From the NCBI GenBank assembly GCA_977017575.1, contig CDRNVI010000047.1, positions 248,001 through 312,000 on the forward strand: a DNA stretch of 64,000 bases, written 5' to 3'. A program made the translations under genes and the position numbers. The stretch's first letter is position 1, and the number at the start of each line of letters is the position of its first letter. This DNA is from Paramoeba atlantica. Taxonomy: Eukaryota > Protista > Discosea. Below, one piece after another: positions 15,942 to 46,555 of the stretch. The notes under the pieces were generated by a model. That model had not been told where the DNA came from, made no database searches, and was given only the letters and a program-made list of their open reading frames with translations.

Positions 15942-16474
15942 TACCTCGCTTTTCGAAAAGCTAGAAGTCAGGTTTAATTTCTCTTGCTTTTATTCGGTGG
16001 CACATTATTCCTCAGTAATGCTCTTTTCCTTCCACTTTACCGATAGTCACGCACTACCCAAGGAAACCGGTACAAAGGACCACATGACACCAAGTTCTGA
16101 TGATCATCACGTCCAACGTTCATCAAAAGTACGTGGGGTGTCCTTCCCACAGGAATACGATTTAGCGCGACTTACACAAGATGTGGAAAACTTTTCGCGG
16201 GACACTAATATGGACGTAGAAAATTGGGGTGGGGTGACATGTGGTAAGCAAGGTGTAATTGCAATAGATTGGAGCAGAGAATATCTTTCCGGGTCTCTAA
16301 ATTGGAAGTACTTACCGTCAAGCTTAGAGTGCTTCGAAATCTGGGAAAACCAGCTCTCTGGCGAAGTGCCATTTCAGTTCTTACCGGTAACATTGAAAAT
16401 TCTTTCACTCTCATACAACGAATTTTCTGGAACTCCAAATTTCTTATTCTTACCACCTTCGATTGAGGTTGTCA

Positions 16475-16502
16475 ATAAAGATACAGTTTCTGTACCTTGT
16501 TG
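16475..16502 (+). ncRNA. spliced-leader exon copy (28 nt) at the 5' end of the LINE
   Basis: ATAAAGATACAGTTTCTGTACCTTGTTG aligns to positions 12-39 of trypanosomatid SL exons; followed directly by a 39-nt 5' UTR and the ATG. Confidence 0.85.
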
Positions 16503-19500
16503 AATTATTTTCAATTTTGTACTAACTTTATCTTCCGGAGCATGGCCTCCAATGTCACCTCACCGGCTCCCATCGCGCACGACGGCCTCCCTCGAGGACC
16601 TGTCAGCGCGCAGCGACATCCCCAGAGCTTTCACTTCATCCAAAGTCGAGCGATGCCCGTCAAAATCCGCCCCTCGGACAGCGTCACATGGTCATATTTC
16701 CCAGACACGCATGCCGCAGCCATTGCCCTCACAGAACGAGAGTTCTTCTCGAGTGTCCACACGGCTGAAGCCTCGATCGGCAAAACCTTGAAGTCGGAAA
16801 GCAAAAGAAGTGATGGTCTGATAATCAAATCGTGTACAATTCAAGATGTCATTGAAAACAACGCATGTGAACACCTAAAATACCAAGAAACGGGAAACCC
16901 AAGTCGCACGTTTTGTCACGCCAGCTGGAGTTCCGCCTACAGGGATTCGTTCATGCAGCTTAACGCAGTGTACTCCTCTTCGAACGCGCTCGGCAAAGCG
17001 GTCACGAAGAAATTATGTGGTAGTGACATCCCAGGATTACGAAAATTCCAAATCACACACGTAACTCGAAAAACACAACCCATTGAACTACTACGGGGTC
17101 ACCCAGAGATCACCTACGACGCACCCTATAGGATCCGAGATGACTCTTACAAGGTGTCACCGCCATCATATGCCTCAAAACACGCTCTCGAACCACGTGC
17201 CTCATGCGCTTATAAATGCCGGGACAAAACATCGTGTCTCCACGCATGTTGCAAAGTACGACACGAAGGATCTCTTCCGCCTAACGTGTCTCTTCCCTCT
17301 CCCGAGGACGTTGCCCCTATGGAACCCTCACTTACTTCTCACAGAAGACCGTGCAAACACACATGCCGCGACAAAAGAAATTGTCTGCACAAGTGTTGCA
17401 AAGTGGGGGTCCCCATTACAATGCCCAAAGTAGTCCTCAACCAGTGCTACCCCTCGTGGAACCACCCATAGCTCGAGCAAGTAGTCCACTACCAGCAGAC
17501 TTATCCATAGACACCGATCAGCATACCACACCAGACATCGGACACTTCGAAGAGGTCAGGGATCCGGAGCTCCCGACCGTAAATCCGCCCTCACTAGGAT
17601 GCATGGATGACGCCACACACCACACACAAACATCAACCAATGAAGTCAATTATCGCCCCTGTCGGCACATATGTAGCAACAAAGCTCAGTGCAAGCATCG
17701 ATGTTGCAAAAATGGTGTCATACAACCTAGCACGGAGGTTGTACTCCGCGAACCCGTCCGTACCTCTCCAGACCTGCACACCAGCAATGACAACAACACC
17801 CCTGCCCCAACAGCCCCTCGTCGCAACTGCGCTCATAAATGTAAGGACAAGGCAACATGTAAACATCAATGCTGCCAGAAAGGAGTTCTCCTCAAAGTCG
17901 CTGAAGTAGCGTACTCTGCCATATGCTGGACCACGAGAAATATACTGTGCCCTGCAATGGGTGATGCGGAACGCGCCGCAAAAGCTTCACTACCGCCCCC
18001 TCCACGCGCAACAACCTACCCCCCAGTTCACACAAACCCCTCGAATCGCTCGAGTCCAATACTGAGCCCTGTGCGGAATGCACCACTTGTCCACGCCCCG
18101 CAACATGATTCCCCTTCTGTACGCCGCTCCTCACCTTCTTTACCCCTTGTGCAGTCCGCAACAGATCCCACGCCTCTGCCCTTACCTTTACCTCCCCCAC
18201 CAGAAGGAAACTGCGAACACACGATATTGCAGCGCATCCCTCGTGTCCGGTAAGTCCCGGCTACCCGACCTCTCCCTGAACTGCAGAACCTACTCGAAAC
18301 ATTCCGCACAATGAATGGAGGTCGCGTTTTAGTCCGTTTCACAGAGGAACAGTGGGAGAGTATTATTGCGAAGATCGAGGAACGCTGCAACTCGTATATC
18401 CACCTGGCGCGAAACAAAGAGGACGCCCTGTCGCAAGCTGAAATACTCTCAGCAATCCTCGCTGTAACTGCATTCGAGGCCGCACGGGAAAACGATCCGA
18501 CGCACGGCTTTCTTATACGGACCAGAACTGGCAGAGCCCGAAGAAACTCACGACCCTTAGCCATTGAACGCACAGTGAAAGTACTCAGTCAACACGTTCG
18601 ACAACTTAAACGTGCGCTAACGTTCATGAAGGGTCCTGCGAGAAACAAGCAACGAGGGAAAATAAAGGAAGCCGAAAAGGCACTAAAGCAGTAAATGGAA
18701 GAATCCAGTATGCAGAGGAAAGAAATCGATCGACGGTGGGCTCTTACGCGATTCCAGCGAAATCCCTGGACAGCCGCGGGCGAATGCTTAGATCGCGTCG
18801 ACCCATCTACCTCAGAAACTGAGACGTCCTACCCTACAGTTCCTGTACAGGAGGTTGAAAGATTCTTTGTGGGCTCAATGTCTAGACCAGAAGAGATACA
18901 CAAGATTCCTCCCGCAGAATTTACGAAACCAATTCCCCTTGATGAGATGCAATGGTCAGATATTGACTCAGACATGATCGCAGCAGCCGTCGCATCCAAA
19001 CGCTCTGGGGCTGCCCCAGGCTCGGACACTGTATCGAACGCGCTGCTAAAGCGCTGCGCCCCTGTCTTTACTCACATGGCACAGGTGTTTAATGATGTCC
19101 TAAAATTTGGTGTATGCCCTCCAACCTGGAAAACTGCGGTCACTCGACTTATCCACAAAGGGGGCCCCACCTCAAGTATGGAAAACTGGCGGCCGATAAG
19201 CTTGACTAGCTGCATTGGGAAGCTTTTCCACTCAATCCTCAGTCACCGTATCCTTCAGCATTCCCTGGATTCCAATGCCCTGGACACAACAATACAAAAA
19301 GGCTTCTTGCCGCATATGAATGGGACAGTTGAGCACACCCAGGTCCTTTGCGAGCTCCTCGAGCACCAGCGGCGCCACAAAAGGCAATACGTGCTTGCCT
19401 AGTTTGATATCAAAAACGCGTTTGGATCTATACCCCATACAATTTTATTTCAGGCCTTAAAATGGGCGCGCGTCTCACCGATCCTCATTAACTACATCAA

Positions 19501-21321
19501 AGCGCTGTACGAACGAGCGTCTATACAAATTAAATGTGCAGAAGGACTCACGAAGTCTATTGAGATAGGTCGTGGTGTATTGCAGGGAGATACGCTTTCA
19601 CCTATTTTATTCGACTTGGCGATGGAGCTAGTTCTGCGTTTTGTCCGTTCAAGTTGCCCCGAATACGGGATCACGTGGAATGCGAAAGAAATTTTTCTAA
19701 AAGCCTTCGCAGATGACCTCACTATTCTGACAAATACCCCCCAGGAAATGCAGAATGCTACAAACGCACTCGTCAAAGTTCTAAGCGATATTGGGATGAA
19801 ACTAAACGTGAAAAAATGCCGGCTGCAACACATGGCGATGACGCAAGACTCTGGATATATGACACGCCGACCACAGATCATGATCGGCACGTCACCTATC
19901 CCACACATATGTGATAATGGTAGCACATTTTTAGGCATGACGCTCGCACCCGGTGCTCAACAAGGCAAGACACTCTTTCTAAAACTACGAACCCGTCTGC
20001 GAGCCTGGTTGCGTAATATATCTTCCAGCGCACATGACCTTCCCGCGCGCCTGTGGATATACAATAACGGCATCATCTCTCGTCTGCGGTATTCCTTCGT
20101 CGTGAACTCATGCCTTACCTTCAATCACGTACTTCGTCTACAGCGATGCGCCACACGCGAAATTCGGAAATGGTTAAACGTAGCGAAATCAGCAACTAGT
20201 GAGCTGCTCTATTCAGAGCATGGCTGGAATCTCATGAGTCTGTCAAAACTTTGGCTTCTTTCCACTGTGGGGACAATGGAACAAATGGATAAATCGCGTG
20301 ATCCCGAGGTCCAGCACGCTTTACGTGAGCGCATCAGGCGAGAAGCGAACAAAAGGAGAGCAGGATACATTCGCCCGCCGACGGATATGCACAGTACAAG
20401 CCATAGTAACGTCCGAAGACTCCTTGGAAGCGAATACGAGCGACACCTCACGGAAGCCGTCCAACGGCGTACTGCCGTAGCAGGACGATGGTTCAGAATC
20501 GCAACGGAAGCAGACCTTGCGAGAGTCTTCGCCGCCGCCCTATGCAACCTCAAGAGTGAATCGCTTTCGCGGTTCACATCCTCAGTGCTTACCGAGACGC
20601 CGCTCCCAACCAGGGCATCTCTTCGTAGGTGGGGCGTATCGACATGCGAGCGATAAATGTCCCATATGTGACACTGAGACACAAACTACGCGGCATATTC
20701 TATCTGGTTGTAGGAAGTCACTCGAACAAGGGAGGTATACCCTACGGCATAACATGGTACTACAGGCATTAGCGAACTCCGTACAACGATTCTCCTCCAC
20801 TAGTCAATGTCACTTCGATCTCCCCCACTTCCGCTCCACCCCCGCGTGGCTCACGAACCTTGATACTGAGCTACGTCCTGACGGATGGGTGAAACTATCT
20901 AACGGAGAAGAATACATTATAGAACTTACCTGCCCTTGGGAGGAGAATTTTGAGTTCGCACACGAGCGCAAAATAGAAAAGTACACGAGTTTATATCACT
21001 CTAGAAAACTCGACCATCCTACCACATTCCTACTCGTCTTCGAGGTGGGAGCGAGAGGCAAACTGCATATGTCGGCCCGAACGCTCAACTCTCTCTACAT
21101 GGGAAATGAAGAAGCGGTTGCAGTGTGTCGCCGAAATATGACGAGTAGCGCTCTCCGGGGAAGTTTCATAATTTTCCAGCACCGCGAGAACAAACAGTGG
21201 ATGGAGGTTAGTTCTGGGGAGTGAGTCGCTGACTGTCAGGTGATTTCAACGCGTTTTGTGCGCGTAATATGGAACTCCCATATTCACCGTCTGATCTCTG
21301 TAGAATATTTTCTACATGATA

Positions 21322-21348
<27 letters not shown>
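16475..21348 (+). mobile_element. full-length, decayed RLE-type non-LTR retrotransposon (HERO/NeSL-like) with a 5' SL exon and an (AT)n tail
   Basis: Reconstructed ORF 16542-21224: RT motifs NWRPISL, QKGF, DIKNAFGSIPH, LQGDTLSP, AFADD, LNVKKC; CCHC CPIC..HILSGC; RHN; endonuclease LRPD..IELTCPWE..ERKIEKY. In-frame stops at 18251, 18692 and 19400; frameshifts near 17440 and 20645. Confidence 0.93.
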
Positions 21349-21352
<4 letters not shown>

Positions 21353-21414
21353 CTTTCAACAATTTTGAAGGCAATATTGATTTTAGTGCGCTACCTGCAT
21401 CTCTTCGGACGATG

Positions 21415-21993
21415 ATAAAGATACAGTTTCTGTACCTTGTTGGTACTTTTTCCTTAGTTCATCCTTTCTTTCCCCGGCAACGGGCATACTCTTACTGTAT
21501 TTTCATGCCCGTTGCCGGCCGGCACTAAGGTCGGAACTGTCCCTCTTGTCGCTGAAGCAGGGGACGCGCTTTCACCACTTCACCCCTCCCCGACTCACTC
21601 CCCTGGAGTGAGTGTGCTTCCCCCTCTCGGCTTTTTTTCGACTTGTCTTTTTCCTCTCCGAGAGGGCCATGCGTCACGGTGGCCTCCCTTGAGGACCACT
21701 AGACGTGTCCTCCGCCGACGAGACTCGGCTCTCTGCACCTGGCGGTCGCCCAGCTCACCGCACCTCGGCTCTGTCGCAGCTCTCTGCACCCGGATTGCCC
21801 TCGAAACTGTAATATGGGGATTACGCATCCGGCTCTCTGCACCTGCACATGACAACCGAGCTCTCTGCACCTGGGACGCCAGCTCTCCGCACCCGCACAC
21901 CTCCGGCGAGGACGAAACCTCACATGGTCCACCCGTCGTATGCGGGATAAGGACATGGTGAGCAAATCTCTGCACTATAAGTGCATGATAAAA
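21415..21993 (+). mobile_element. SL-RNA-headed SINE-like element, type A, copy A1
   Basis: SL exon plus GTAC, a 14-bp hairpin at 21474-21518, internal CTCTCTGCACC repeats, and 3' ATCTC-TGCAC-tataa-GTGCA-TGATAAAA; interrupts an LRR frame. Confidence 0.88.
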
Positions 21994-22318
21994 CACATAC
22001 ATAACAATGTGAAATTGCGGGGCAACCTACAAATTGTAGGGGCACATGTGGACATGATCTACGATGTTTCCGAAACGGAAATTACAGTTAGCAACAGTTG
22101 TGGCGCGCTGGAACAATATATTATGATGTGATTGGTAGGGAAAAAGTAGGGGGGGGGGGAATTCTCGGTATGTTAACCTGTAACCCGTTTAATACATTAG
22201 TCTACCCTGTGTGAGTGGTATAGTCAACACCGTACACATTCTCCTATTTTTTACTCTCACACTTTCTTCACCCGTACTTTACCTAAGCTTTTATCTGTTC
22301 CCCCAACTCCGATATTTC

Positions 22319-22951
22319 ATGTCCGGCCTACGCTCGTGGGAAGGGGTGACATGTGACGAGGAGGATCACCCGGTTGCGCTGCGCTGGTGTGCCTTAGGAC
22401 TCGGTGGTACGCTTAGTTGGGATTACCTCCCCCAGCGTCTGGTACGCATTGACGTCAGTCACAACAACCTGCGAGGCCCAGTAAACCTCCGCGAGGCCCC
22501 AGAGTGTTTAGAAGAGCTCAATCTTTCCCACAATGCCTTCACGGGGGAATTTGATCTCACTCAGCTCCCCCCGGAGTTGAAAAAACTTTATCTCACCGAT
22601 AACCAATTTGAGGGAAAATGTGACCTGAGCTCACTACCCCCTTCGTTGACTCGGTTAAGTGTGGGATTCAATCATTTTTCTGGTGAGGTTGGTTTGAACG
22701 ATTTGCCGAGGACGTTGCAAAGTCTGATGCTGTCGTTTAACCAGCTGGAGGGGGAGTTGGATATGAGCGATTTGCCACGGGATATGGAGGAGCTCTACGT
22801 TAGGAACAACAAATTTAATGGTAAATGTGACCTTTCGGAGGTTGTTAAGCGAGGTCTTAAGGTGGATGTGTCATTTAACAGGTTTACGGAGATTGTGCAG
22901 TCAAACAATACGGCATCCGAGAATATACAAATTGGTCACCAGGACGAATAA
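22319..22951 (+). CDS. LRR protein (member 6; lacks the N-terminal VRG/PxEY motif)
   Basis: WEGVTC cap remnant plus regular LRRs; start uncertain. Confidence 0.82.
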   Translation: MSGLRSWEGVTCDEEDHPVALRWCALGLGGTLSWDYLPQRLVRIDVSHNNLRGPVNLREAPECLEELNLSHNAFTGEFDLTQLPPELKKLYLTDNQFEGKCDLSSLPPSLTRLSVGFNHFSGEVGLNDLPRTLQSLMLSFNQLEGELDMSDLPRDMEELYVRNNKFNGKCDLSEVVKRGLKVDVSFNRFTEIVQSNNTASENIQIGHQDE

Positions 22952-23254
22952 AATTTGTCATGTAAGGTAGTGGGTTTGTATTTGATCGTGATAGAATGGA
23001 ACGACATTTGATATATCTCAAACGTCAGGGAACAATGTAGATGGTAATTTCTTCCGCGGATAGAGATCGAAATGAGATCATACAAAAAATCCGCGAGATG
23101 CACGAAATCACACACATTACATCCGCAACCTATATTTGTACTTTTAAGACTGCAAAAAATGCAAAGCTTTTTTCTAGCGACAACAGTGAGACGACAATAG
23201 GTCGTAGAAAACCCAATCAATCTTTTTTTCTTTCCGTTCTGTACAACGAAGATA

Positions 23255-23833
23255 ATGAGTGCTTCTTCTGCTACACCACGAGCTGCAAAGGTGCGTGGCG
23301 GGGTGTTTCCCCAGGAATATCATCTTGCCCTTCTGGTGAAAAATATTTCAGTTTCTTTTTACGGCGAGAGGTGGAGCGAAAACACTCCAGCGTGCTCCTG
23401 GAACGGCATAACGTGTGATACGGACCAAAACATAATTAATGTTGGATGGTATAACTGCGGCTTGAACGGAAGTCTTCAGTGGTCCTATCTGCCTTCTACT
23501 CTTCTTACACTCGAGGTTGCTCTCAATTCACTCTGCGGAACAGTTTCGTGGGATATCCTCCCCTCCCAATTGGTGATACTTTCACTGCATCGTAATTATC
23601 TGACGGGTGAAGTGTTGCTACACAATTTGCCACATAGCCTGAAAGAAATGCACCTACAAAGCAACAATTTTTGTGGCAATGTCTATTTTCAAAATTTGCA
23701 CGAAGGGTTACAAGTGTTATACTTGAGTTTGAACCCTGAACTTTATGGTTCAATAGATTGTAACAAACTTCCGACCAGTTTACGTTACCGAGCATGGTAC
23801 GGCACAAACATTACACTCAAGAATGTTGACTAA
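23255..23833 (+). CDS. LRR protein (member 7)
   Basis: KVRGGVFPQEYHL..CSWNGITC plus LRRs. Confidence 0.9.
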   Translation: MSASSATPRAAKVRGGVFPQEYHLALLVKNISVSFYGERWSENTPACSWNGITCDTDQNIINVGWYNCGLNGSLQWSYLPSTLLTLEVALNSLCGTVSWDILPSQLVILSLHRNYLTGEVLLHNLPHSLKEMHLQSNNFCGNVYFQNLHEGLQVLYLSLNPELYGSIDCNKLPTSLRYRAWYGTNITLKNVD

Positions 23834-24117
23834 AATGAGATGTCTCAAAAAAATGTGACAAGGAGAAAATGGAAATCTGTGAAAAAAAGTAAAGTCTTTC
23901 AACAAATATTTACACTCAAGACAATTATTTGTGTAACAAAAAACAGGAAAACAACAATTTGTGAATTTTTTATTGTGCAACAATTTCAGAAGTTGCACAA
24001 TAGAAAATTCACAAATTTTTGCGAACGTTGTACTGCTCCCTCTTTCTTATCTTTTCATTCGCAACCCATCTTTCCCCACACTTTTCCTCTCTCCCACTTC
24101 CCCTTACCCCTACCCCC

Positions 24118-25443: not shown

Positions 25444-25735
25444 AAAGAAGGCGGTAGTGATGTTTGTGTTATAAAACAAATGCTTTACAAAAGATTACAA
25501 TGGTCATTTACTTTCTCATACGGGATAGGTTCCGAGTATCGGATGGAAAACTGCAACAGATACGATAGTATCCCTTATGCTATTTTGTGTTTTTTTAACT
25601 TTATATTCGGCAAAAAGTATACAACTAAGCTAGATATTTTTACAGGCTCGACGCAGAACGCGTGGCTAAACTCGTGGATTATCTTTTTGCTTTTCTTCTT
25701 AATATTTGCATTTCGTCGATTATTTCTTCTAACTC

Positions 25736-26569: not shown

Positions 26570-26955
26570 ATATGATATCATGTAAAAAAATATAGAATGA
26601 TATCTTGTAAACAAGATGTAATCTTTGTCTACCGTGTAGTCTTCAACATGAAGCGCGCAGCAGTAGTGACTTTTATGTTAAAAACAACCACCGCGTTTAA
26701 CGAAATGGCTTAAATGGAAAAATTTGGTATGGGCCACACAAATGGCCATAATGGTCTGTTGAGCAATTTGTTTTTGTGTGAAGTATGCTAGTGCATGGAC
26801 CACTTTGTATTCTATTTTATGTTTAAACCTTGCAGCTGGAGCTTTTGAAGGATGTGTTAAGCAAAGTGAGTAAAGAGCAACACTTATCATCTCTTACACA
26901 ATCCATCAGTAATAGGATAAATCAATTCTTGTATTCTCTCTTTCCTTTGTAATTC

Positions 26956-27399: not shown

Positions 27400-28131
27400 A
27401 CTATTGTGAGTGCGTTTAAAATACATTTCTGGTTTGTACGACGTCGTTTTCTACATGTTTTGCTGGGTACTTCTTATGTACAGGAGAAATAACCTCATCA
27501 GATAACATAACAGAATCTGGGAAGGATAACAGAGTCTGTTCCGCGATGCGGTACATGTAGGATTTGACGCGACAAAACACAGTCTAAAAGGATATCACAA
27601 TGGATTAGTCAAGATATTCAAGTTGCTGTGATACATTTTGGTATATTTTGGCATTCACAAAACATTCTTTATTCGCGTCGTCTATTAAAGGTATACAAAA
27701 TTTACACTATTACTTGTGCATTTAGTATTTCCACTACGATGAATGTGATTTTCACAGATCGCACGACAGACTCGCTACGTCTGCCTTATCATTCCGTCAT
27801 GTTTAAGTTCTCCGACACAGCGGGCGAAAACAGAAAGGCCGGGAAAGTAAGGGGTGTGGCATTACCCTTGGAGTACGAGCTTGAGCGTTTGGTAAGTAAC
27901 ATAGTGAATCCGCTTCCTTCTTGGAACACCTCCGTACCTGCACACCAGTGGGAAGGGGTTGATTGTTCGGGCGGAAGGGAAATCTTGGGGTTTGTGGCGA
28001 AAGGGAAAAGATTGATGGGTTCATTTCAATGGAGTACACTGCCTAGGTCTCTACTTGAATTTTCAGTGTACAACAACAAGCTTAGCGGGGAATTAGACCT
28101 CGTAGGCCTTCCACCGCGTTTGATTTCGTTG

Positions 28132-28700
28132 AAGATACAGTTTCTGTACCTTGTTGGTACATTTTCCTTTAGTTCATCTTTTCTTTCCCCGGCAACGGGC
28201 ATAGTCTTACTGTTTATATGCCCGTTGCCGGCCGGCACTAAGGCCGAAACTGTCCCTCTTTCTCGGCGAAGTAGGGGACGCGCTTCCACCCCATCACCCC
28301 TCCCCGGCTCACTCTTTGATTGAGTATTCTTCCCTCCCCGTATTTCTTACTTTCGCGCCTTTTCCTTCCCGGGGAGCCATGCGCCATGGTGGCCTCCCTT
28401 GAGCACCACTGGGCGTGGCTCTGCCTCGTCTTATCGCGAGGCAGCGGTCGGTTGCAGTGCGCCCCTCCGGCTGCGTAAAGAGGTGGTGAGTTGCCTGGAC
28501 CACCTCTACCGACTGGGACCGAGTCGGTTGCAGTGCACCCCTCCGGCTGCGCAAAGAGAGGGCGAGTTGCCTGGACCCCCTCTACCGACAGAATCCGTGC
28601 TAAACCCCCTTGGTGCGACATCCGTCATTACGGATTGTGCCGATGATATCGGCTGTCGCATCAAGGGCTGTATCTCTGCGCCAACGAGCGCATGAGCATC
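28132..28700 (+). mobile_element. SL-RNA-headed SINE-like element, type B, copy B1
   Basis: AAGATACAGTTTCTGTACCTTGTTG|GTAC, same head hairpins as A1, duplicated ~64-nt internal unit, 3' ATCTC-TGCGC-caacga-GCGCA-TGA. Confidence 0.88.
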
Positions 28701-28770
28701 AAACGTCGTACAATCAATTTACGGGTAGTATTGATCTTTGTCATCTTCCTGCAACCTTACTTTCGTTGAT

Positions 28771-29208
28771 TCAGGGGACGCGCTTCCACCCCTTCATCCC
28801 TTCCCGACTCACTCCCCTGGAGTGAGTGTGCTTCCCTCTCTCGGCTCTCTTTCTCGTGTCTACCTTTCCGAGGAGGTAATGCGTCACGGTGGCCTCCCTT
28901 GAGGACCACTAGGCGTGTCCTCCGCCGACGAGACTCCCGGCTCTCCGCACCTGGGGGTCGCCCAGCTCTCTGCACCTCGGCTCTGTCGCAGCTCTCTGCA
29001 CCCGGATTGCCCCCGAAACTGTAATATGGGGATTACGCATCCGGCTCTCTGCACCTGCACATGACAACCGAGCTCTCTGCACCTGGGACCCCAGCTCTCT
29101 GCACCCGCACACCTCTGGCGAGGGCGAACCCTCACTTGATCCGCCCGTCGTATGCGGGCACGGACTTTGTGAGCATAATCTCTGCACTATAAGTGCATGA
29201 ACGAACAA
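28771..29208 (+). mobile_element. 5'-truncated SINE-like element, type A, copy A2
   Basis: Starts at CAGGGGACGCG inside the head and aligns to 21557-21990; joined flanks give TTG ATA CTG as in the paralogue, so no TSD. Confidence 0.88.
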
Positions 29209-29723
29209 ACTGTCAGTGAATAAGTTCTGCGGTGATGTAACGCTTACTAATCTGCCTTCTAGAATAGAGAGTCTTTCGCTTCGTAACAACGCCGAGCTCA
29301 CGGGTACAGTGCACGTACGCTTACTACCGTCAAGCATGAGGTGCAAAGCATTTACTGAAACTAAAATTTTGCAACTGGACTGATCACTGAAATAGCACAT
29401 ACTGTAGGCACATACTGTAGCACATGTACTGTAGGACTCATTGCGTGATTGTGAAAATTTTATTCATAAAAAGTAATTTTTTTCGAAATCTGCTTCTGTA
29501 TCGTACTTAGAGAGTTTGGAACTTCAGATAGCCTTCTACAAAGCTTTTTTCATGTGATTAATTCATGTGTTATTAATTTCATGTGTTAATTAAATTAATA
29601 CGTCTTTTGTTGACATAACTTAGTTTCTCCCCGGTAATATCGTAATTGAATATTTGACTGTAATTAAAATTGCTGTATGAAAAATTTGTTGCACGGAATT
29701 ACCAATTGGAAACGGACTCCTTT

Positions 29724-30383
29724 ATGATCGTAGCTTCTATTGCATTCAGTGTTATTATCACAGATTGTACGGCAAGTTCTTTACTTCCCTCTTATCATCC
29801 CAAAGCATTCGAGTTCTCTGACACAGCGGGTGAGAGCCGAAAAGCGGGACGAGTAAGAGGTGCTTTACTTCCCGCAGAGTACGAGCTTGAGCGTTTGATA
29901 AGTAACATAGTGAATCCGCTCCCTTCTTGGAATGCATCTGTACCTGCACACCAGTGGGAAGGGGTTGATTGTTCTGACGAAGGAAATATATTAGTGTTTG
30001 TGTCCGAAGAAACTAATTTACGTGGCACACTTTTGTGGGATGCACTACCGAGATCTCTACATCGATTCTCAGTATTCACTAACCAACTTACGGGGGGGAT
30101 TGATCTCGTAAATCTTCCGCCACATTTATCTGGTTTTGACGTATCTTACAATCAATTTACGGGTAGAGTTGATCTCTCCCACCTTCCTTCAACATTATCT
30201 TCCTTGATATTGTCAATGAATAAGCTAAGTGGGCAACTAACTATTGCCAATCTTCCCTCCGGACTTCTTAGTCTTTCACTTCGTCACAACGCTGAACTTG
30301 TGGGAACGATTTCCGCGCAACTGCTACCTGAAAGCCTGACGTACAAGGCCTTTCAAGGGACAAAACTTCAAATACAGAATTGA
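29724..30383 (+). CDS. LRR protein (member 10)
   Basis: RVRGALLPAEYELERLISNIVNPLPSW plus LRRs. Confidence 0.9.
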   Translation: MIVASIAFSVIITDCTASSLLPSYHPKAFEFSDTAGESRKAGRVRGALLPAEYELERLISNIVNPLPSWNASVPAHQWEGVDCSDEGNILVFVSEETNLRGTLLWDALPRSLHRFSVFTNQLTGGIDLVNLPPHLSGFDVSYNQFTGRVDLSHLPSTLSSLILSMNKLSGQLTIANLPSGLLSLSLRHNAELVGTISAQLLPESLTYKAFQGTKLQIQN

Positions 30384-30462
30384 TGTACGATAGGAGCTAC
30401 CGGTCGAGCAGAAAATTTGGTCCACTTTTATTTGGCCCGAACTATTTTGGTCCACATAAATA

Positions 30463-31341
30463 TTTAGGCTCTTCGTTAAACGCGGTGGTTGTTTTCAACT
30501 TAGAAGTCACTCATGCTGCGCGCTTCGCGTTGAAAACTACCACCGCGTATAACGAAGAGCCTAAAAAAGAAAAATTGGCTAGGAAAGCTGAAGAAAACGG
30601 AAGGATTTGAGCCAAAAATGGCCGATTTTTAGGTAAAAATGGGGTCATTTTTGGGTATTTTTGCTCTCAGAGCACTAAATTCGACTTTTTCGTGTGGGAA
30701 ATCACTCGTACGCATGTATTCGAGGCTACCAAACGTATTGGGTGGAGGATGCGGCTCCAACCACACCATTCTTTTGACACAAAAAGACCCCTTTGGGTCC
30801 GAAAATTACTTTTTCGCATTTCTTGGTCAAAAACGAGTCATTTTCGGAGGCGTACCACGGCTTCAAGAAGCTACATCTCGCGAAAACAATGGCGTAAAAA
30901 GCTAATATAGGTCCCAAACTAGCAAAATACAATAGGCGAAACAATTTTGGAAAAATACTTTTTTTACCATTTGTTTCGTCAAGTTGAAATTTTTTTCAAA
31001 AAACAAAATCCGAAAAAATCCGAACTTGACGGACCTGTCCTACGCATACGAGGGGGGGTCACCCCCGGGTAGGGGGGTGGAAAATGCGCGCTAAGACCCC
31101 GGCTACCACTTCTGCGCTTTTATTTCGAAAAATAATTTTTTCAAAAAAAATTCGTGCGGTATGCCCCCCCCATGGACCCCCCAAGGGTCCGATTTTTTTT
31201 GATAATGTTTGGACCACCGGAGCCCCTTTTATATTTTTTTCTTCTATTATATTACTGTGTTCCTCTTTATATTTTCACTGTTTTTGTTCACTTTTTTTTC
31301 AATAATCGAGGGTAGAGCGGTAGTTTTACAACCACCGCAAT
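30463..31341 (+). mobile_element. ~880-bp non-coding element with a long terminal hairpin and a related short hairpin at the other end
   Basis: ~35-40-bp stem AGGCTCTTCGTT..CAAC / GTTG..AACGAAGAGCCT; other end GCGGTAGTTTTACAACCACCGC; full copies recur at 54782-55688 and 63117-64000. Confidence 0.8.
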
Positions 31342-35585: not shown

Positions 35586-35703
35586 GAAAGAATCTCCGCG
35601 AACCCTTCTTTTTTTTCTTATTTGGAGGAGAGAACATTCATATGATCCTTCGTTGATGTCGTAAGAACATTAACTCGCATTTTATTTGCTCTTACATTTT
35701 ATC

Positions 35704-36519: not shown

Positions 36520-36802
36520 CACTTTTTTATTTAGACACAGATGATTACTCTCGTGTGTGTTAGTTAAAGTACTGTAAAATGATCCAGTTTTCCAAGCAAA
36601 AAAGCCTTACTTGTGGTATCAAGGCAATGAAAAAATCGCATGATCTCATTTGATCTCAGTTTTTTACTCATTTATAAAACGTTCCCATAAAAAGCTGTTC
36701 ACTACGGATATTATGGATGCGAAGTTTGTTCCTATTCAAATGCCAATAAGTTTACTTGTCCTTTTATCGGAAGCCTCTTGACATGGTCTTTATCGAAGGT
36801 AC

Positions 36803-38152: not shown

Positions 38153-38472
38153 GCTCTTACATGCATTATCCATGCGTTCCTATCCTTGAAAGTTTTATTA
38201 TTTTCCAATGTTAATAATCCAGAAAAACGTATAAGAACGGCTCCCGGTGTCATCCGCACGGTTGAAATCACAATACTAACTTATTGAAGACTTGCATTCA
38301 AATACTTGCACGACTGTCATTGCCGCGATTTATTCATTATTTTCTTTGATTTCTTTTTTTTATCTTTTGCTCTTGAGTCTTCTTCACTTTCTTTCGAACC
38401 CCACTTACGGACTATAAAATAAATTTTGGCGTACTTTTGATGTCTTTTCGTTCATTTAAGTAATTCTTTTTC

Positions 38473-38880
38473 AGGCTCTTCGTTAAACGCGGTGGTTGTT
38501 TTCAACTTAGAAGTCACTCATGCTGCGCTCTTCGCGTTGAAAACTACCACCGCGTTAAACGCAGAGCCTAAAAAAGAAAAATTGGTCAGGAAAGCTGAAG
38601 AAAACGGAAAGATTATAGCCAAAAATAGCCGATTTTCGGGTAAAAACGGGGTGATTTTCGCGTATTTTTGCTCTCAAAGCACTAAATCTGATGTTTGCGT
38701 GTGGGAAATGACTCGTAGGGATGAAGCAAAGCCTACCGAACGTGTTGGGTGGAGAATGCGACTCCAACCACACCATTCTTTCGACACACAAAGGCCCCTT
38801 GGGGTCCGAAAAATACTTTTTCACCTTCTTTGGTCAAAAATGTGTCATTTTGAGGGGCGCACCACCGCTCGAAGAAAGGA
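38473..38880 (+). mobile_element. partial copy of the long-hairpin element
   Basis: Hairpin at 38473-38575 plus body aligning to 30570-30870. Confidence 0.8.
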
Positions 38881-38934
38881 TACACCTTGTGAAAGGATGT
38901 ACCTTGTGAAAACAACGGCCGAGAAATATTAGTA

Positions 38935-39113
38935 TTTTTTCTTGTGAAAATGTGTTAAAACGCTTCTTTGGGTTATCCCCGAGGCCCTCAACATGCAGAC
39001 ACCCACCCCCTACCCCCTATACGCCTCCTGTGGGGCTCCCGAGCCAAATCTCTCTTACTGGGGGTCAGCCCAAAACTGGCTAGGTGGGGTACCTTACTGG
39101 GGGAAGTATACGG
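38935..39113. repeat. right part of a CCGTA-type MITE
   Basis: Shares segments with 11345-11392 and, inverted, with 15705-15735; ends TATACGG|TA. Confidence 0.55.
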
Positions 39114-39407
39114 TAAGCTTAAAAACTCATAGGCTGGTCCTGTACTAATCTCGTTTTACGAACGCTATCTAGGGTAACAAACGGTGGGAAACGCGCTAGC
39201 TTTTTTTGAGATCTGTTGAATGCCGAAGGAATTGGGTCAAAATCTCTTACGGTGTGCTCTGGAGCCTGGGGGTGGGGGGGAGCAAGCCAAGAGCTGGACT
39301 GTGTATGATTGTGCTGCTTTGTTTCTAAAACAATAAGGCGAGTGAGTCTGATACCGTTTATGTCTTTTCCGTTTTATTTTGATTTTGAGTTTATATTCCT
39401 GCTTCTG

Positions 39408-42400
39408 ATGAAAATAGAAGGACTATTGCAACAGTCGGTGAGGCATTACTACTCTTTGGATCCTTCCATGAGTGTAGAAGCGGCCTTGCAATTCATTTAT
39501 CGAAATGCACAAGCGCGTCTTCGTCAGATGGTGGGGCACACTCTTGCTGCTGAGAAGCAGTCAAGCGACAGTTCTGCGCAGCCCGGGGAAGAGACCCTTC
39601 GGGATGGAAGTCTGACCTTAGAAGCCGAAAAGGCGCTTTCAGAATTTAATGAAGCCGCTTATTTGGGTCAACCTTCGAAACATCAGGAATGTTATAACTA
39701 CATTGAGCCCATTGCCAAGCATCACGCAATGTACGAAATTTTCGAAGGAGATTTACTAAATTGGTACATCGCTTTGGGAATCAATGCCTTGCTATCCGGA
39801 TTCTCAAGGCGACAACTTGAAGCGACGGCAAGAGGCATTGGGTTACCGACGAAACACATTCAGCCTGCAGCACGATGGACGTTGACATGCTTTATTTCCC
39901 GTTTATCTTTGGACGGGACGTTTTGTAATCTTGTTTCTATTGCTCACCGACCTGAGACTTCACATCCCACGAGTGAGCTTGCACAACCAACGGAGCCTTC
40001 GGAATTATCCGTAGAGGCGCCGGTTTCAAGCGATCTAGCCTTTAATGCACAACCTTTAGCACAGTCACTCGTCATGGACTCAGATCCATCCAATTTAAAA
40101 GCATCAACTGCTACCCAAGAATCTGCACTGCCAACTGAATCAACACCCCCACCCTCCAAAACCGCACTTCTTACAAATCTCGCTCCTTCTACGTCTTTTT
40201 CATTAGCCTCTTCTGCCAATCTTTCGGCCACTGGAAAAGACAGCTCCTTTGAGACACCCCCGGCACGACCCTCTCCTACCTCACAATTGCGCTCTTCTCC
40301 GTTAAGTTTGTTTCCCGAAACCCATCCCTCCCCGAATGATGCAACTCCTACCAGCATCAACCCCCCTTCCAGCCGCAAAAGAACATTTCTTGCCAAAGTA
40401 GACAACACTTTTGGATTGTCCTCGACCAAAAAAAACAGGATAACAAAATCCCCCACATCATCCGAAACCCCAGAAAAGGGACAAGAAACCAAAACAACCC
40501 CTACCCGCCCGTCGAAAGCTCGCAACTCTCGCACCCTCAAAGACACCAACCCCAAACCTCCCCGTCCAAGCCATAAAAAACAAAAAACAACTTCACTCCA
40601 ACCCAACACCACATTCTCTACCCCTTCACCAACGCAACCTAACAACAACAACAACAACAGCCCCTTCGTCTCCCTATCCACCATAACAACCCTTATCCCC
40701 TCCGAGACTCCCCGTCCCCTCTCTACACCCCCCATGGCCGCTACCCCTACACCCCCTATGGCCACTGCGGCCTCTACCCCCACAAGTCCTATCGCCACTA
40801 CCCCCACAAATACCATCGCCACTGCGGCCTCTACCCCCACAAGTACTATGGCCGCTCCCCCCACCCCCGATGAGCTCATCGCCCTCTGCACGGACCCCAG
40901 CCGCTCCGTCCCCGTCCACTGGGTCACCTCCGCCGACCCCCCCGTCCCCGCCGCCACGGCCCACGCCATGCTCACCGCCCCCGCCCGCGTCCCCCACGCT
41001 ACCCTGGTGGCGCACCGGCCCCCGATCGGGCCCGACACCTCGGCGTGGCAGCTGCTGCAGTGGTACCGGGTGGGGGAGCTGGAGGGGTACGCGCGGGGGA
41101 GGGGGGTGGGGTGCGGGGGGGCGGGGAAGCGGCGGGGGAGGCTGGTGGGGGCCCTGCTGAGGTACTGGGGGAAGGGCGGGGGGAGGGGGAGGGGGGGGAG
41201 GGAACGGGGGGGGAAGGGGGAGGTGGTGGGTGGGGAAGAGGGGGAGGTGGTGGGTGGGGAAGAGGGGAGGGGAAAGGAGGAGGGGGGGGAAGGGGAAGGG
41301 GAGAAGGGTTGTGTAGGGGAAGAGAGGGAGGTGGTGGGTGGGGAAGAGGGGGTGGTGGTGGGTGGGGAAGAGGGGGTGGTGGTGGGTGGGGAAGAGGGGG
41401 TGGTGGTGGGTGGGGAAGAGGGGGTGGTGGTGGGTGGGGAAGAGGGGGTGGTGGTGGGTGGGGAAAAGGGGAGGGGAAAGGAGGAGGGGGGGGAAGGGGA
41501 AGGGGAGAAGGGTTGTGTAGGGGAAGAAAGGGAGGTGGTGGGTGGGGAAGAGGGGAGGGGAAAGGAGGAGGGGGAAGGGGAAGGGGAGAAGGGTTCTGTG
41601 GGGGAAGAGAGGGAGGTGGTGGGTGGGGAAGAGGGGGTGGTGGGTGGGGAAGAGGGGGAGGTGGTGGGTGGGGAAGAGGGGAGGGGAAAGGAGGAGGGGG
41701 GGGAAGGGGAAGGGGAGAAGGGTTGTGTAGGGGAAGAGAGGGAGGTGGTGGGTGGGGAAGAGGGGGTGGTGGGTGGGGAAGAGGGGGTGGTGGTGGGTGG
41801 GGAAGAGGGGGTGGTGGTGGGTGGGGAAGAGGGGGTGGTGGTGGGTGGGGAAAAGGGGAGGGGAAAGGAGGAGGGGGGGGAAGGGGAAGGGGAGAAGGGT
41901 TGTGTAGGGGAAGAAAGGGAGGTGGTGGGTGGGGAAGAGGGGAGGGGAAAGGAGGAGGGGGAAGGGGAAGGGGAGAAGGGTTCTGTGGGGGAAGAGAGGG
42001 AGGTGGTGGGTGGGGAAGAGGGAAAGGAGAAGGGGGGAGGGGAGAAGGGTTCTGTAGGGGAAGAGAGGGAGATGGTGGGTGGGGAAGAGGGAAAGGAGAA
42101 GGGGGAAGGGGAAGGGGAGAAGAGTTCTTCTCGGGGAGATGAGGGGGGTGGGGAGGAAGTGGAAAAGGGGGAGAACGAGGGGGGGAAGTCTTCTCGGGAA
42201 GAAGGAGAACTCGAGAGGGAGGAGGAAGAAGAAAAGGGGGGGAAAGAGGTTGTAGTGATTTCGCAGGATGTGTCGCAAGATTCGGCGTTGCGAGAGGTAT
42301 CGCAAGGCGGTATTTTTTCGGAAAATGGTGGGGAGAAGGAGCGAGGCGGGGAGAAGGAGCGAGGCGGGGAGAATGGTACAGAGGCGGGTGCAGGGGTGGT

Positions 42401-42434
42401 GGAGATGGATCACATTTTGGGTGATCCGGCTTAG
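39408..42434 (+). CDS. hypothetical protein with P/T/S-rich middle, possible SAP-like motif and G/E/V-rich tandem-repeat tail
   Basis: ~1000-aa ORF; globular N-terminus; [32 protein letters not shown]; EGVVVGGE and [13 protein letters not shown] repeats. Confidence 0.7.
41190..42130 (+). repeat. G/A-rich hierarchical minisatellite (GGTGGTGGGTGGGGAAGAGGG units)
   Basis: 21-nt units nested in larger ~400-nt duplicated blocks. Confidence 0.9.
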
Positions 42435-42809
42435 CAGGGGGATCGACTGCAGAGAAGCTGCATCCCGAAGGACTAGGTGAGTCGGAAATGAGAGACTCAA
42501 ATGTGCACGACGTTGAAGGAAAGAGATCAATGCCCGAAAGCGAGAGTTCTCCTCCAGACCTTCATTGAAAAGAGGTTTGCATGGGATCCCTTGTCTTAAA
42601 ACTCTCTCTTGTCTTAAAATCTTTAAAAGGAGATTTTTTTGTTAAAGTACCATATTTATGTTTTCTGAAAATGGTATCATTTACATTATTTTGAATACAT
42701 ATCTTAAAGAGTAGTTCTGGAAAATCTCGTATTTGTGATGTTATACATGTTCTGGTTTGCAAGATTAAGATTTCAAGATACGATTGTCAAGAGCCTCCGA
42801 TAAAAAGAC

Positions 42810-43960
42810 GTCGAAGTTCCAGTCCTACCATCGATTATCTTTCGTCTTCGCAATCTACAGGAGTCCACCTGAGCACGACATGCTGAGGGTGGTATGTCCG
42901 CCCTTTCCATCTTGACCCTCTCCCACAACTCTCGGACACCTCTTGGGGGATCATAGTGTGCTGCAAGGCGCCGCTTGAGTCTCAATGGGATTAAAGTCAG
43001 GGGATTGCGGGGGCCACCGCACAACTTCAATCCTGGTACCCCGAAGGTACCGTTGCGCACAACGGATTGCTCTTGGGGTCGTTATCTTGTTGGGAGACAG
43101 CCTTGGAGGATTTAGACCGATACTTTCGATAGAGGGGAAAAGATTCTCAAGAATCTTCAGGTTCCCTTGAACCAGAGTTGTTTTTTTCATGCACTTATAA
43201 TGCAGAGATTTGCCTCACTACATGTCCTTACCCCGCATACGACGGGTGGATCACGCGAGGGTTCGCCTTCGCCTGTGGCAAGTGGGTGCAGAGAGCTGGC
43301 GTCCCAGGTGCAGAGAGCTCGGTTGTCATGTGCAGGTGCAGAGAGCCGGATGCGTAATCCCCATATTACAGTTTCGGGGGCAATCCGGGTGCAGAGAGCT
43401 GCGACAGAGTCGAGGTGTGGAGAGCTGGGTGACCGCCAGGTGCGGAGAGCCGGAAGTCGTAGCGAAGGACACGTCTAGTGGTCCTTAAGGGAGGCCACCG
43501 TGACGCATTACCTCCTCGGAAAGGTAGACACGAGAAAGAAAAGCCGAGAGAGGGAAGCACACTCACTCCAGGAGAGTGAGTCGGGGAGGGGTGAAGGGTG
43601 AAAGGCGCGTCCCCTGCTTCAACGAAAAGAGGGACAGTCCTGACCTTAGTGCCGGCCGGCAACGGGCATATAATTACAGTAAGACTATGCCTGTTGCCGT
43701 GGAAAGAAAGGATGAACAACAAGGTACAGAAACTGTATCTTTATACACATACCCCACACCGCTTCAGGACATACGTCCAAATCATGATGTCCTCCCCTCC
43801 ATATTTCACCGTAGGGATCACCCCTTTTCCACCTAGTTCCTCCCCAGGAATCCCTCATGCACAAAGACCTCCCCGTTTGAAAGCGCGAGATATTGGTCTC
43901 GTCCGACCACACAACTGGGGCCCAGTACTCATGGGCTGTAGCAAAGTACTATTTTTTACA
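42810..43960 (-). pseudogene. Tc1/mariner (DDE) transposase remnant interrupted by SINE A3
   Basis: Minus-strand motifs VVWSDET, PTVKYGG..IMIW, QQDNDPK, WPPQSPDFNPIE, ELWERV; several frameshifts. Confidence 0.85.
43178..43744 (-). mobile_element. SL-headed SINE-like element, type A, copy A3 (spliced form)
   Basis: Reverse-strand SL exon at 43717-43744 joined directly to TTCATCC; the 15-nt GT..AG segment of A1 is absent; same 3' hairpin plus A-rich tail. Confidence 0.88.
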
Positions 43961-44183
43961 AAGATCTACAAAATGCAACAAAAATGAGCAAAAACGGATA
44001 AAATAAGAGAATCAAAATTTCCCAGGGGGGCGCACTTCTGAGAAGGGGTGTATTTCCGTTTCGTGTTTCTGGGGACTATACTATTCGCAAAGAAACCATA
44101 CTTTGAATGTGAATAATAACCTTGAGGGTGGTATACACAGTCACAAACCTATTCTCAACCACCCACATTTTCACACCCCCACC

Positions 44184-45005
44184 ATGTACCCCCTATCCCT
44201 CGCGGACTCTGCCCGACCCGCACGGGTCCGGGGGGCTCAGCTTCCCCCTGAATACGACCTCGACCGGTTCCTTGGCGATATCTCTCCTCGTCATCCCTCC
44301 TGGACCCTCTCCCGTCCCGTGGACCAGTGGTCCGGGGTGTACCTGGACAAGGAACGCCACCACGTGTGTCGTATCCGGTGGGATGACCGCAAGCTACGTG
44401 GTCGCCCCTTGTGGACCCACCTCCCTCCCACCCTCACCTCCCTAACCCTTGGCACCGCCCAAGGGGGGAATGCCCTGGACGGGGCTGTGGGGTTCGCCTC
44501 CCTTCCCCGCTCCCTGTGTGAGCTGCAACTCACCCATAACCGGTTCAGTGGGCCGTTGGCAACCCGGAACCTCCCGCATGAGTTGCGGGTGCTCGCTGCG
44601 GTGGACAATGTCCTCGAGGGGACACTAGAGTTGGCTGAGCTCCCTGTGGGGATAAGGGAGGTGTTGTTGTCCCGGAACCGGTTCCACGGAGCCGTGAATC
44701 TCTCCGCTCTCCCGTTTAAGATTCGTATGTTGACACTGTCGCATAATGCGTTCACAGGGTCGGTGGGGTTCTCGGCGTTGCCGCAGTCTATGGAACAGCT
44801 TACGCTGTCGCATAACCAGTTAAGTGGGGAGGTGGAGATTCGAAATCTCCCAGCAGGGTTTATGCGACTGCTTGCTTCCCACAATCAGTTTAGTGGAGTA
44901 GCTGTGCTGGAGAAGATTCCTTCCGGTGTGATTCGGGTGGATTTGTCGTGGAATAAGGGTCTACGCGCGCCGAAGGAGTTCGTGCCCTCTTGTGTGGAAT
45001 TTTGA
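44184..45005 (+). CDS. LRR protein (member 12)
   Basis: RVRGAQLPPEYDLDRF..PSW..WSGV plus LRRs. Confidence 0.9.
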   Translation: MYPLSLADSARPARVRGAQLPPEYDLDRFLGDISPRHPSWTLSRPVDQWSGVYLDKERHHVCRIRWDDRKLRGRPLWTHLPPTLTSLTLGTAQGGNALDGAVGFASLPRSLCELQLTHNRFSGPLATRNLPHELRVLAAVDNVLEGTLELAELPVGIREVLLSRNRFHGAVNLSALPFKIRMLTLSHNAFTGSVGFSALPQSMEQLTLSHNQLSGEVEIRNLPAGFMRLLASHNQFSGVAVLEKIPSGVIRVDLSWNKGLRAPKEFVPSCVEF

Positions 45006-45194
45006 AGCGTTGCAGTTTGTATTTGTTTAATGGGGTAAAGGTGATCATTTCAAGGTGAAGGAAAAACCCTGAAGTAAAATTAGCGCTTTGGAAATACATA
45101 TTGTATCCGCCGACAATCCGCACTTTTTTATACTAAACGTTACAAGTACGATATTACTTTTTCGTTTCATTCATCAGAACTTTGCTTCATATGT

Positions 45195-46555
45195 ATGCTC
45201 TGTCACACCTCTGACATTTCGACACAGCCTAGACTGCCGTCTAAGGTGCGAGGTGCAGAATTGCCTCAAGAATACGATCTCGCACGATTCATTGAGCATA
45301 CTCAAAATACAGATCCCTCATGGACCACATCAACAATTGCGTGTAATTGGCGTGATGTAGAATGTGATGACGGCATGCACGTTACTGACCTTAACTGGAA
45401 ACGTCCTGGGGAAATTGCGGGAACGCTGCAATGGAATTGTCTACCCCACACATTACTCAGGTGTTACATATGGTACAGCCGTTTGACAGGAAGGGTGGAG
45501 CTTGAGGCACTGCCACGCCAGCTTGTTGTCATGCATAAAGATACAGTTTCTGTACCTTGTTGGTACATTTTGCTAGCCCTTCCTTTCTTTTCCCGGAAAC
45601 GGGCATACATTTTCCTTTTAAATGCCCGTTTCCGGCTGACGGCTAGCGGAAACTGTCCCTCTTTGTCGTGGAAGTAGGGGACGTACTTCCGACTTTTCAC
45701 CCCTCCCCGGCTCACTCCTTGAGTGAGTTTTCTTCCCTCCCCGGCTTTCTTCTTCTCGCGCCTGTCTCTTCCCGGGAGCTATGCGCCATGGTGGCCTCCC
45801 TTGAGGACCACTGGGCGTGACTCTGCCTTGCATTATCGCGAGGCAGCGGTCGGTTGCAGTGCGCCCCTCCGGCTGCGTAAAGAGATGGTGAGTTGCCTGG
45901 ACCACCTCTACCGACTGGGACCGAGTCGGTTGCAGTACGCCCCTCCGGCTGCGTAAAGAGAGGGCGAGTTGCCTGGACCCCCTCTACCGACAGAGTCCGT
46001 GTCGAACCCCCTTTGGCGACATCCGTTGTGGGCGGATTATGTGCCGATGATATCGGCCGTCGCAGTAAGGGGATTATCTCTGCGCCAAAGAGCGCATGAT
46101 AAACAAAAATTTGGCATAACTCATTTGTTGGAAACATAGATTTAGCACTTTTGCCTAGCTACTTGGAAACAATGTTTCTGACCAACAACATGTGTACGGG
46201 AAGCATAGACATGACGCACCTTCCTGCTAAGTTATTATACCTTGATCTATCTTACAACGCATTTTCAGGAACTGTGGATCTAGCAAGCTTGCCCCGCGGC
46301 TTGTGTTCTCTCAATTTGGCTCAAAACGACCTTACAGGGACTATAAATCTCCAGCAGTTTCCTTCAACAATGACAAGCTGTCAATTCCAACTTAATTCTT
46401 TCAGTGGTCTTGTAAAGTTTGACAAACTTCCACAAAGCTTGTTGTTATTGCGCTTAAATGGCAATTCGGAGCTATACGGTGAACTAAAGAACTCTGATCT
46501 TCCTCAAGCAATGGCCGAATTCGATTATTGTGGGACAAACATTTGTTTAAAGTAA
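45195..46555 (+). pseudogene. LRR gene (member 13) split by SINE B2
   Basis: KVRGAELPQEYDL..LPRQLVVM to 45534, then IWHNSFVGNIDLALLP..TAA from ~46107. Confidence 0.9.
45535..46106 (+). mobile_element. SL-RNA-headed SINE-like element, type B, copy B2
   Basis: Full 28-nt SL exon plus GTAC; body aligns to B1; 3' ATCTC-TGCGC-caaaga-GCGCA-TGATAAACAAAA. Confidence 0.88.

Follow-up and report, generated by a model that had tools for sequence, protein, structure and literature searches.

Retrotransposons with a restriction-like endonuclease recurrently inserted at one codon boundary of leucine-rich repeat genes

The 64,000-nucleotide stretch analysed here (the window; positions 248,001 to 312,000 of contig CDRNVI010000047.1, assembly GCA_977017575.1, filed under Paramoeba atlantica) carries leucine-rich repeat (LRR) genes that are broken by a long interspersed nuclear element (LINE) and by short interspersed nuclear elements (SINEs), all of which enter the repeat unit at the same place. 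Judged by its motifs, the LINE is a retrotransposon without long terminal repeats (non-LTR), of the type that encodes a restriction-like endonuclease (RLE). Its relatives occupy the same position at other loci, and together they represent a real, specific and rather unusual targeting system. We think it likely that the family integrates by target-primed reverse transcription at this preferred LRR codon boundary and that its templates are trans-spliced. The literature searched yielded no earlier account of an RLE element that targets LRR codons.

Repeat searches within the window defined a 4.9-kb element bearing a reverse transcriptase (RT), a SINE-like family A (copies A1, A2 and A3) and a SINE-like family B (copies B1 and B2). 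Junctions were read directly from the sequence and translated in frame, and the LRR phase was tested with a hidden Markov model (HMM) of the LRR unit on flanks rejoined after removal of the insert. The preliminary description of the window had placed five inserts at one LRR codon, and all five indeed fall between positions 4 and 6 of the LxxLxLxxN core, each in the sense orientation of its host gene. Insert-free flanks across these five junctions scored 12.7-34.7 bits. It was also right that consecutive repeats are hit in two genes, where spacers of 66 nt (22 codons) separate the inserts, and that there is no clear target site duplication, as paralogous empty sites of gene g28 show none. An intact window paralogue gives the empty site of A2 as TTG AT(A)^CTG, with a loss of 1 nt at most, while 2-4 nt have been lost at the B1 site relative to intact window paralogues.

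The screen for LRR units was run on 240 kb in total, namely the window and 13 fetched loci, all drawn from one ENA assembly, ERZ24900291 (L011 is a Logan contig duplicating L010). Queries with the RT piece of the window and with a spurious open reading frame (ORF) within SINE B had found relatives in one ENA assembly only; the SINE B ORF gave five clusters, suggesting a low copy number, and a harvest of junctions from read-through ORFs added two further proteins only, one of them within the RT of another retroelement. Element ends were placed via the common 5' 28-mer, the common 3' motif and BLAST. Nine further insertions were found at the same LRR position, in L002, L004, L006, L007, L008 and L010, so that 14 of the roughly 24 copies catalogued in the window and the further loci sit at the LRR site. 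Rejoined flanks matched the LRR-unit HMM at 12.7-35.5 bits in each of the eight events having both flanks. In 10 of the 12 readable 3' junctions the downstream flank begins at base 1 of the position-6 codon, which lies 9 nt ahead of the Asn codon, and the upstream flank ends 0-3 nt, rarely 6 nt, before that point.

This precision, with 10 of 12 junctions on one 2-nt position of a 69-nt period, has a probability of about 1e-12 under chance; the earlier estimate of (1/22)^4, about 4e-6, concerns the window alone. All 14 LRR-site copies are in sense orientation (P ~1e-4). LRR units make up about 4% of the sampled 240 kb, or about 10% when whole LRR genes are counted, and the enrichment of 14 of 24 copies in LRR units has a P of 7e-14 to 7e-9. 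Within the sampled 240 kb, enrichment in LRR genes and codon phase, two points of the check that had been proposed, are both significant, and the phase is not random. At L004 a 95.6% identical intact paralogue supplies the empty site TTGAAT^TTACGA, into which the insertion is exact save for three extra A; overall, comparison with paralogous empty sites reveals no duplication and a loss of 0-4 nt. The nucleotide pattern suggested previously for the site did not survive, as it proved to be merely the LRR codon consensus with a surplus of ATN at position 6, which was found in 6 of 10 hit units versus 15 of 143 intact units (P 5e-4). The ATN excess is a nucleotide preference beyond the protein consensus, although A-ending tails could account for part of it. 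The events differ in element type, tail and flanks, and because the LINE subfamilies at the LRR site are only 62-75% identical in DNA among themselves, the targeting habit is old.

Table 1. Features of the window and insertions at the further loci
Feature	Position	Strand	Rejoined flanks	Basis or remark
LRR gene g16, 5' part, up to ...LPPSIEVV + one base	15997..16474	+		ORF/translation; blastx against intact LRR paralogues, E 9e-26
RLE-type LINE, degenerate, several frameshifts	16475..21348	+	IEVV(+a) / ISFN	Pfam RVT_1; copies 96-99% identical in L003/L004
LINE spliced-leader relic	16475-16502	+		5' end of 16475..21348
LINE RT	~18695-20656	+		Pfam RVT_1
LINE CCHC + RLE	~20517-21224	+		RLE aligned to R2Bm via intact relative P0169
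LINE 3' hairpin	21294-21319	+		hairpin fold
LINE tail TAACA(TA)n	21320-21348	+		
Complete 22-codon LRR unit ISFNNFEGNIDFSALPASLRTM between LINE and A1	21349..21414	+		66 nt
SINE A1, long form: spliced-leader relic, GTAC..TTAG segment, body, 3' hairpin as LINE5's, tail TAAAACAC	21415..21996	+	LRTM / IHNN	
LRR gene g16, 3' remainder, IHNNVKLRGNL... to stop	21997..22131	+		
LRR gene g28, 5' part, up to ...LPPRLISL	27628..28131	+		59% identity to paralogue 29670-30383
SINE B1, long form; first 3 nt of spliced-leader relic missing	28132..28702	+	LISL / (T)SYN	
22-codon LRR unit between B1 and A2	28703..28768	+		66 nt
SINE A2, 5'-truncated, begins at A1 position ~135	28771..29208	+	LLSL(+at) / LSVN	empty site from paralogues
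LRR gene g28, 3' remainder	29209..29383	+		
SINE A3, short form (spliced-leader relic directly on TTCATCC), off-target	43182..43744	-		spacer upstream of LRR gene 44103-45005
LRR gene g45, 5' part, up to ...LPRQLVVM + one base	45195..45534	+		
SINE B2, B-like subfamily, full length	45535..46108	+	LVVM(+c) / IWHN	
LRR gene g45, 3' remainder, IWHNSFVGNIDL...	46109..46555	+		
LINE2 at LRR site	L002			
LINE + B element in tandem at one LRR site	L004			
LINE fragment + LINE6, one LRR unit apart	L006			
LINE6 + LINE7b, one LRR unit apart	L007			
B at LRR site	L008			
Further SINE-like element at LRR site	L010			3' junction ambiguous
5'-truncated LINE, off-target	L003			25-bp target duplication
LINE5, off-target, with SINE fragment nested inside it	L005			
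B-type copies, off-target	L006, L009, L010			
LINE, off-target	L013			
Old SINE, off-target	L004			downstream of LRR gene
SINE, off-target				within another retroelement's ORF

The family consists of autonomous single-ORF LINEs and of the SINE families A and B; two short SINE-like elements, C in L004 and D in L010, were sighted once each. The LINE ORF carries three to four N-terminal CxHxCx2Kx2CxHxCC motifs, an RT, a CCHC motif and an R2-type RLE. In the window it is fragmented into six or more pieces, and L014 holds an uninterrupted ORF of 1617 aa (8001-12854; the intact relative P0169), in which three of the N-terminal motifs and RVT_1 are followed by CPIC..H....C and RPDG...IIELTV. The RT matches Pfam RVT_1 at E 2e-14 to 4.5e-29 and has R2Bm (8gh6/8ibw) as its best solved relatives. 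Residues 1470-1602 of P0169 align to 911-1032 of R2Bm, including CPIC..H....C and with RPDG..IIELTV falling on KPD..IVDVQV, in an alignment that is weak by its score of 6.4 bits but motif-complete. The assignment to the RLE type follows from this alignment of the CCHC and endonuclease-region motifs to Bombyx R2. The LINE ORF gave no Exo_endo_phos match that would indicate an apurinic/apyrimidinic (AP) endonuclease, and the N-terminal Cys/His motif had no match in Pfam or PDB. An exhaustive HMMER search with the RT returned metazoan hypothetical RTs as the nearest named clusters outside its own genome. Ten named cluster members checked for the RT included no named trypanosomatid element (no tree was built), and a protein atlas search gave generic RT clusters only.

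The LINEs and SINEs have in common the ATCTC-stem-TGA end and a relic of the spliced leader (SL). In all families the 3' end consists of ATCTC, then a hairpin of 5-7 bp, then TGA; a short tail of variable sequence follows, made of 7-10 nt of mixed A/C or of (TA)n. The hairpin folds in 11 of 13 families, and its stems differ yet remain complementary. That of SINE A equals that of LINE5 except for one G-C pair that is G-U in LINE5; no LINE bearing the hairpin of SINE B was present among the sampled loci. With these terminal recognition sequences in common, the SINEs appear to be non-coding elements mobilised by a partner LINE.

Full-length copies carry SL nt 11-38 at their 5' end (28 nt), and 11 of the 14 begin exactly at ATAAAG. 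An SL RNA gene is found on a microbial-mat metagenome contig (L001:1-568), where the 28 nt stand after AACTTTAACG and before GTATGAG and the gene adjoins a 5S rRNA gene; this contig comes from a close relative, with the exon identical over 28 nt and the intron over its first 18 nt. In the sequencing runs of the organism itself the SL exon is very deep and is joined exactly at its 3' end to many unrelated sequences, and one contig from these runs extends it into the same intron start. Since the relic matches the exon of the SL RNA gene and excludes the intron start, what the elements carry is exon only, and it is unchanged across subfamilies that differ by 25-38% elsewhere. Such copies, with the SL exon joined straight to element sequence, indicate that the templates are trans-spliced RNAs. 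SINE A and SINE B each occur in a long form (relic, GTAC...TTTAG, TTCATC...) and in a short form with the relic directly on TTCATC..., and the segment absent from the short forms ends in a polypyrimidine tract and AG. The simplest reading of the short forms is fresh trans-splicing at that acceptor, followed by retrotransposition, the copy once more beginning at nt 11. Counted from the conserved 3' end, SL nt 10/11 here corresponds to the nt 11/12 site of SLACS/CZAR (PMC5814959). Searches for a self-cleaving ribozyme of the R2 or L1Tc style in the element 5' regions gave nothing in Rfam at the gathering threshold or at E up to 5. Nor do the junctions show any microhomology that could account for the missing SL nt 1-10. 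The 28-mer had no exact match in a prokaryote genome collection, as expected.

Several other arrangements of the leader were seen. At 16503-16545 and at the homologous sites of LINE5 and LINE6, the SL relic is separated from the ATG by 38 nt that contain a TACTAAC-like branch site and a run of pyrimidines, with GGAG immediately ahead of the ATG. This looks like a trans-splice acceptor that would yield a leader-plus-ATG mRNA. Another retroelement has a complete 38-nt SL copy behind an A-rich tract (L014:6428-6465), so full-leader copying is possible in this genome. Two 5' ends (L014:5650-5710 and 7920-7973) bear composite relics of SL nt 11-22 followed by nt 6-38, and the intact 1617-aa LINE ORF begins just past one of them. 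Copies at L007:1404 and L008:8483 begin at SL nt 23, where the leader's internal CAG has just ended, which may be coincidence or a second preferred stop.

In the mechanism that we propose, the target would be the position 5/6 boundary of the LxxLxLxxN core in a plant-type, dispersed LRR family. The priming nick would fall exactly 9 nt upstream of the Asn codon and the other strand would be opened 0-3 nt (rarely 6) further upstream, an R2-like behaviour from which the lack of duplication and the loss of 0-4 nt would follow. Next to the nick, the protein of the element probably reads the DNA consensus that recurs at codon level, and the RT probably recognises the conserved 3' ATCTC-hairpin-TGA that the SINEs copy. 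The DNA copy reproducibly starts at SL nt 11, and our favoured guess for the missing nt 1-10 is that the endonuclease retains a trace of an ancestral specificity for the SL site. A larger version of this idea, offered only tentatively, is that an RLE lineage derived from SL-gene parasites moved to the LRR codon boundary, and that its endonuclease or RT complex cuts its own trans-spliced leader at the ancestral nt 10/11 in 5' joining.

Several observations weigh against this mechanism or limit it. About 10 of the 24 copies (~40%) lie outside LRR units, and the specificity is only partial. The step of DNA recognition is one that we infer, and hit sites hold little beyond the LRR codon consensus. 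Exact nick positions carry an uncertainty of 1-2 nt wherever tails end in A, the junctions of L008 and of element D in L010 are displaced by a few nt, and the 5' junction of the latter is off-site with a target deletion. The LINE junction SL|AATTATT lacks an AG in the DNA copies, where trans-splicing cannot renew it; the LINE relic must therefore be inherited and constrained, for example by function. Finally, 240 kb and about 24 copies from a single assembly make a small sample. True site-specific integration in phase with LRR codons is supported, and the insertions recur across loci and subfamilies, but the site is preferred rather than exclusive. No common motif was seen among the 10 off-target copies. 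For A3, whose non-LRR site had been read by the same nucleotide pattern, blastx found nothing and the rejoined flanks scored -0.8 bits with the HMM; it lies in no recognisable LRR unit, and that reading finds no support. ARAGORN found no tRNA beside the LINE in L005. The off-target LINE copy at L003:1759-7152 shares 99% identity with the LINE of the window and has in turn been split by a Tc1/mariner-type element (DDE_3), located at approximately 4172-5731.

The start of the copies at SL nt 11, homologous to the SLACS/CZAR nt 11/12 site (PMC5814959), raises the question of whether the real home of the family is the SL RNA gene array, as for SLACS/CZAR/CRE, with the LRR inserts being secondary events at SL-like sites. 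The LINE end that directly abuts the SL relic of a B element in L004 fits such a home, and the sampled loci exclude the SL RNA gene arrays of this genome, a gap that also counts against our own proposal. However, SL nt 1-10 do not stand before any of the 14 5' ends, no sampled copy has a 3' end that continues into the SL gene intron, and contigs aligned to the SL gene showed no joint at nt 10/11, contigs being weak evidence of absence. Mimicry of the SL by the LRR target was considered and rejected, as hit sites are no more SL-like than intact units (7.8 vs 7.4 of 28 matches, not above background). We regard an SL home as unlikely. Much less probable still is random integration followed by selection that purges all copies except those in redundant LRR genes. 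These genes are numerous and dispersed, and second inserts do occur in genes already broken, but a bias in retention cannot yield a single-nucleotide position, 14 of 14 sense orientations or the ATN preference. The spread of a few ancestral insertions across LRR paralogues by gene duplication or gene conversion is equally improbable. B1 and B2 do follow the equivalent repeat of their genes; yet the two elements match at about 86%, with much greater divergence between their host genes, and across the sites element types, subfamilies and tails differ and the flanking codons are unrelated.

A further alternative concerns the relic rather than the site. It may have been captured once and inherited ever since, its fixed start reflecting a fixed RNA 5' end set by an internal promoter or a processing site. 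The LINE junction without AG, which trans-splicing could not renew, agrees with single capture, as does the invariance of the relic across diverged subfamilies, which would be expected of a constrained functional element. Against it, the short forms of A and B lack exactly the segment between the relic and the polypyrimidine-AG, and a fresh leader at that acceptor explains them most simply. Inheritance from one capture is possible, though we doubt it as a general account, and we continue to prefer repeated copying of trans-spliced templates into the LRR boundary.

The window itself is one-strand, intron-poor DNA in which small LRR genes alternate with housekeeping genes. The interval 12429-49463 holds about 14 small LRR genes, every one of them in plus orientation, among genes for S-adenosylmethionine synthetase, a TPR co-chaperone, prefoldin and NAP; the landing-pad family is thus dispersed across transcription units rather than forming one clustered array. 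The LRR genes encode a KVRG...W.GV.C N-terminus and, after it, units of 22-24 residues with the pattern LxxLxLxxNxFxG..DL..LP. A dispersed repeat family with no relation to these elements occurs in both orientations at 30463-31341, 38464-38883, 54782-55684 and 63118-64000, with further copies at 10711-10837, 26636-26726, 61831-61948 and 62591-62719; it is also nested within LINE5 of L005 and is probably a miniature inverted-repeat transposable element or another non-autonomous element. A G-rich tandem array with a 24-nt period (12/27/30-nt variants) at 41016-42191, inside the ORF 39309-42434, encodes GGEEG(V)VVGG-like repeats and has strong GC and AT skew.

Site-specific RLE elements such as R2 are under development as gene-insertion tools, and how their specificity shifts is an open question. 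The family described here offers several diverged subfamilies whose target is of a new kind, namely codons that recur periodically in genes of a dispersed family. For biochemistry it provides an intact ORF of 1617 aa as well as empty and filled sites that occur naturally. It suggests that in an organism with trans-splicing, spliced RNA can serve as the route of retrotransposition, and it poses the puzzle of copies that begin at leader nt 11, the classical SLACS/CZAR position. If the descent from SL-gene parasites is true, this would be the first RLE element with a landing pad defined by protein-repeat codons and a natural experiment on the retargeting of such enzymes.

In mechanism the family resembles R2 and other site-specific RLE elements (R4, NeSL, Utopia and Dong), which likewise combine in one ORF the Cys/His motifs at the N-terminus, an RT, a CCHC motif and an endonuclease of the PD-(D/E)XK type. 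As in the R2 group, insertion into a multicopy target is specific in orientation and sequence (here 14 sense events at the x5/L6 boundary), junctions are near-blunt with small deletions, there is a 3' RNA signal, and tails are short and variable without long poly(A). The targets of site-specific RLE elements are rRNA, snRNA, SL, tRNA and microsatellite sequences (PMC4640811), whereas the target here is a codon boundary in a protein-coding repeat, the specificity is partial and the copies bear an SL relic. The CRE clade of trypanosomatids (SLACS, CZAR, CRE1/2) is also of RLE type and also has kinetoplastid hosts, the host here being taken as one. The nt 11/12 point at which SLACS/CZAR interrupt SL genes is homologous to the start of the relic (PMC5814959). 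CRE elements reside in SL RNA genes with target duplications and poly(A) ends (PMC12278014, PMC3636483). In contrast, no sampled copy is flanked by SL gene sequence, each full-length copy having only its own 5' SL nt 11-38; LRR sites show no duplication, tails are short and mixed, and one off-target 25-bp duplication was seen. The insertion features that define CRE membership are absent.

SL relics are known from the 5' ends of DNA copies of trans-spliced RNAs in dinoflagellate retrogenes (PMC6050394, PMC12014239), which resemble our elements in keeping leader sequence at the 5' end; here, however, the carrier is the retrotransposon itself and the relic is cut at one fixed nucleotide not preceded by AG. 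A coding multigene family as landing pad has a precedent in kinetoplastids. The retrotransposon hot spot (RHS) genes of Trypanosoma are a hot spot for ingi/RIME (PMC7563717) and TcTREZO lies in MASP pseudogenes (PMC5814959); in these cases elements occupy one coding position of a large multigene family, leaving halved pseudogenes that often hold several elements (PMC7563717, PMC5814959). The contention that the LRR target is unlike known ones accordingly holds for the RLE elements in the literature examined but is weakened by the RHS and MASP precedents and by the link to the SL. As at the RHS hot spot, LINE and SINE share one position of a coding multigene family and leave split pseudogenes. 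Ingi/RIME, however, have an AP-type endonuclease and Pr77, whereas the present element is of RLE type with no AP domain, and its target, being a repeat unit, recurs several times per gene, so that adjacent units can both be hit. After RHS, the LRR genes provide a second and independent example of a multigene family in kinetoplastids that acts as a sink for retroelements.

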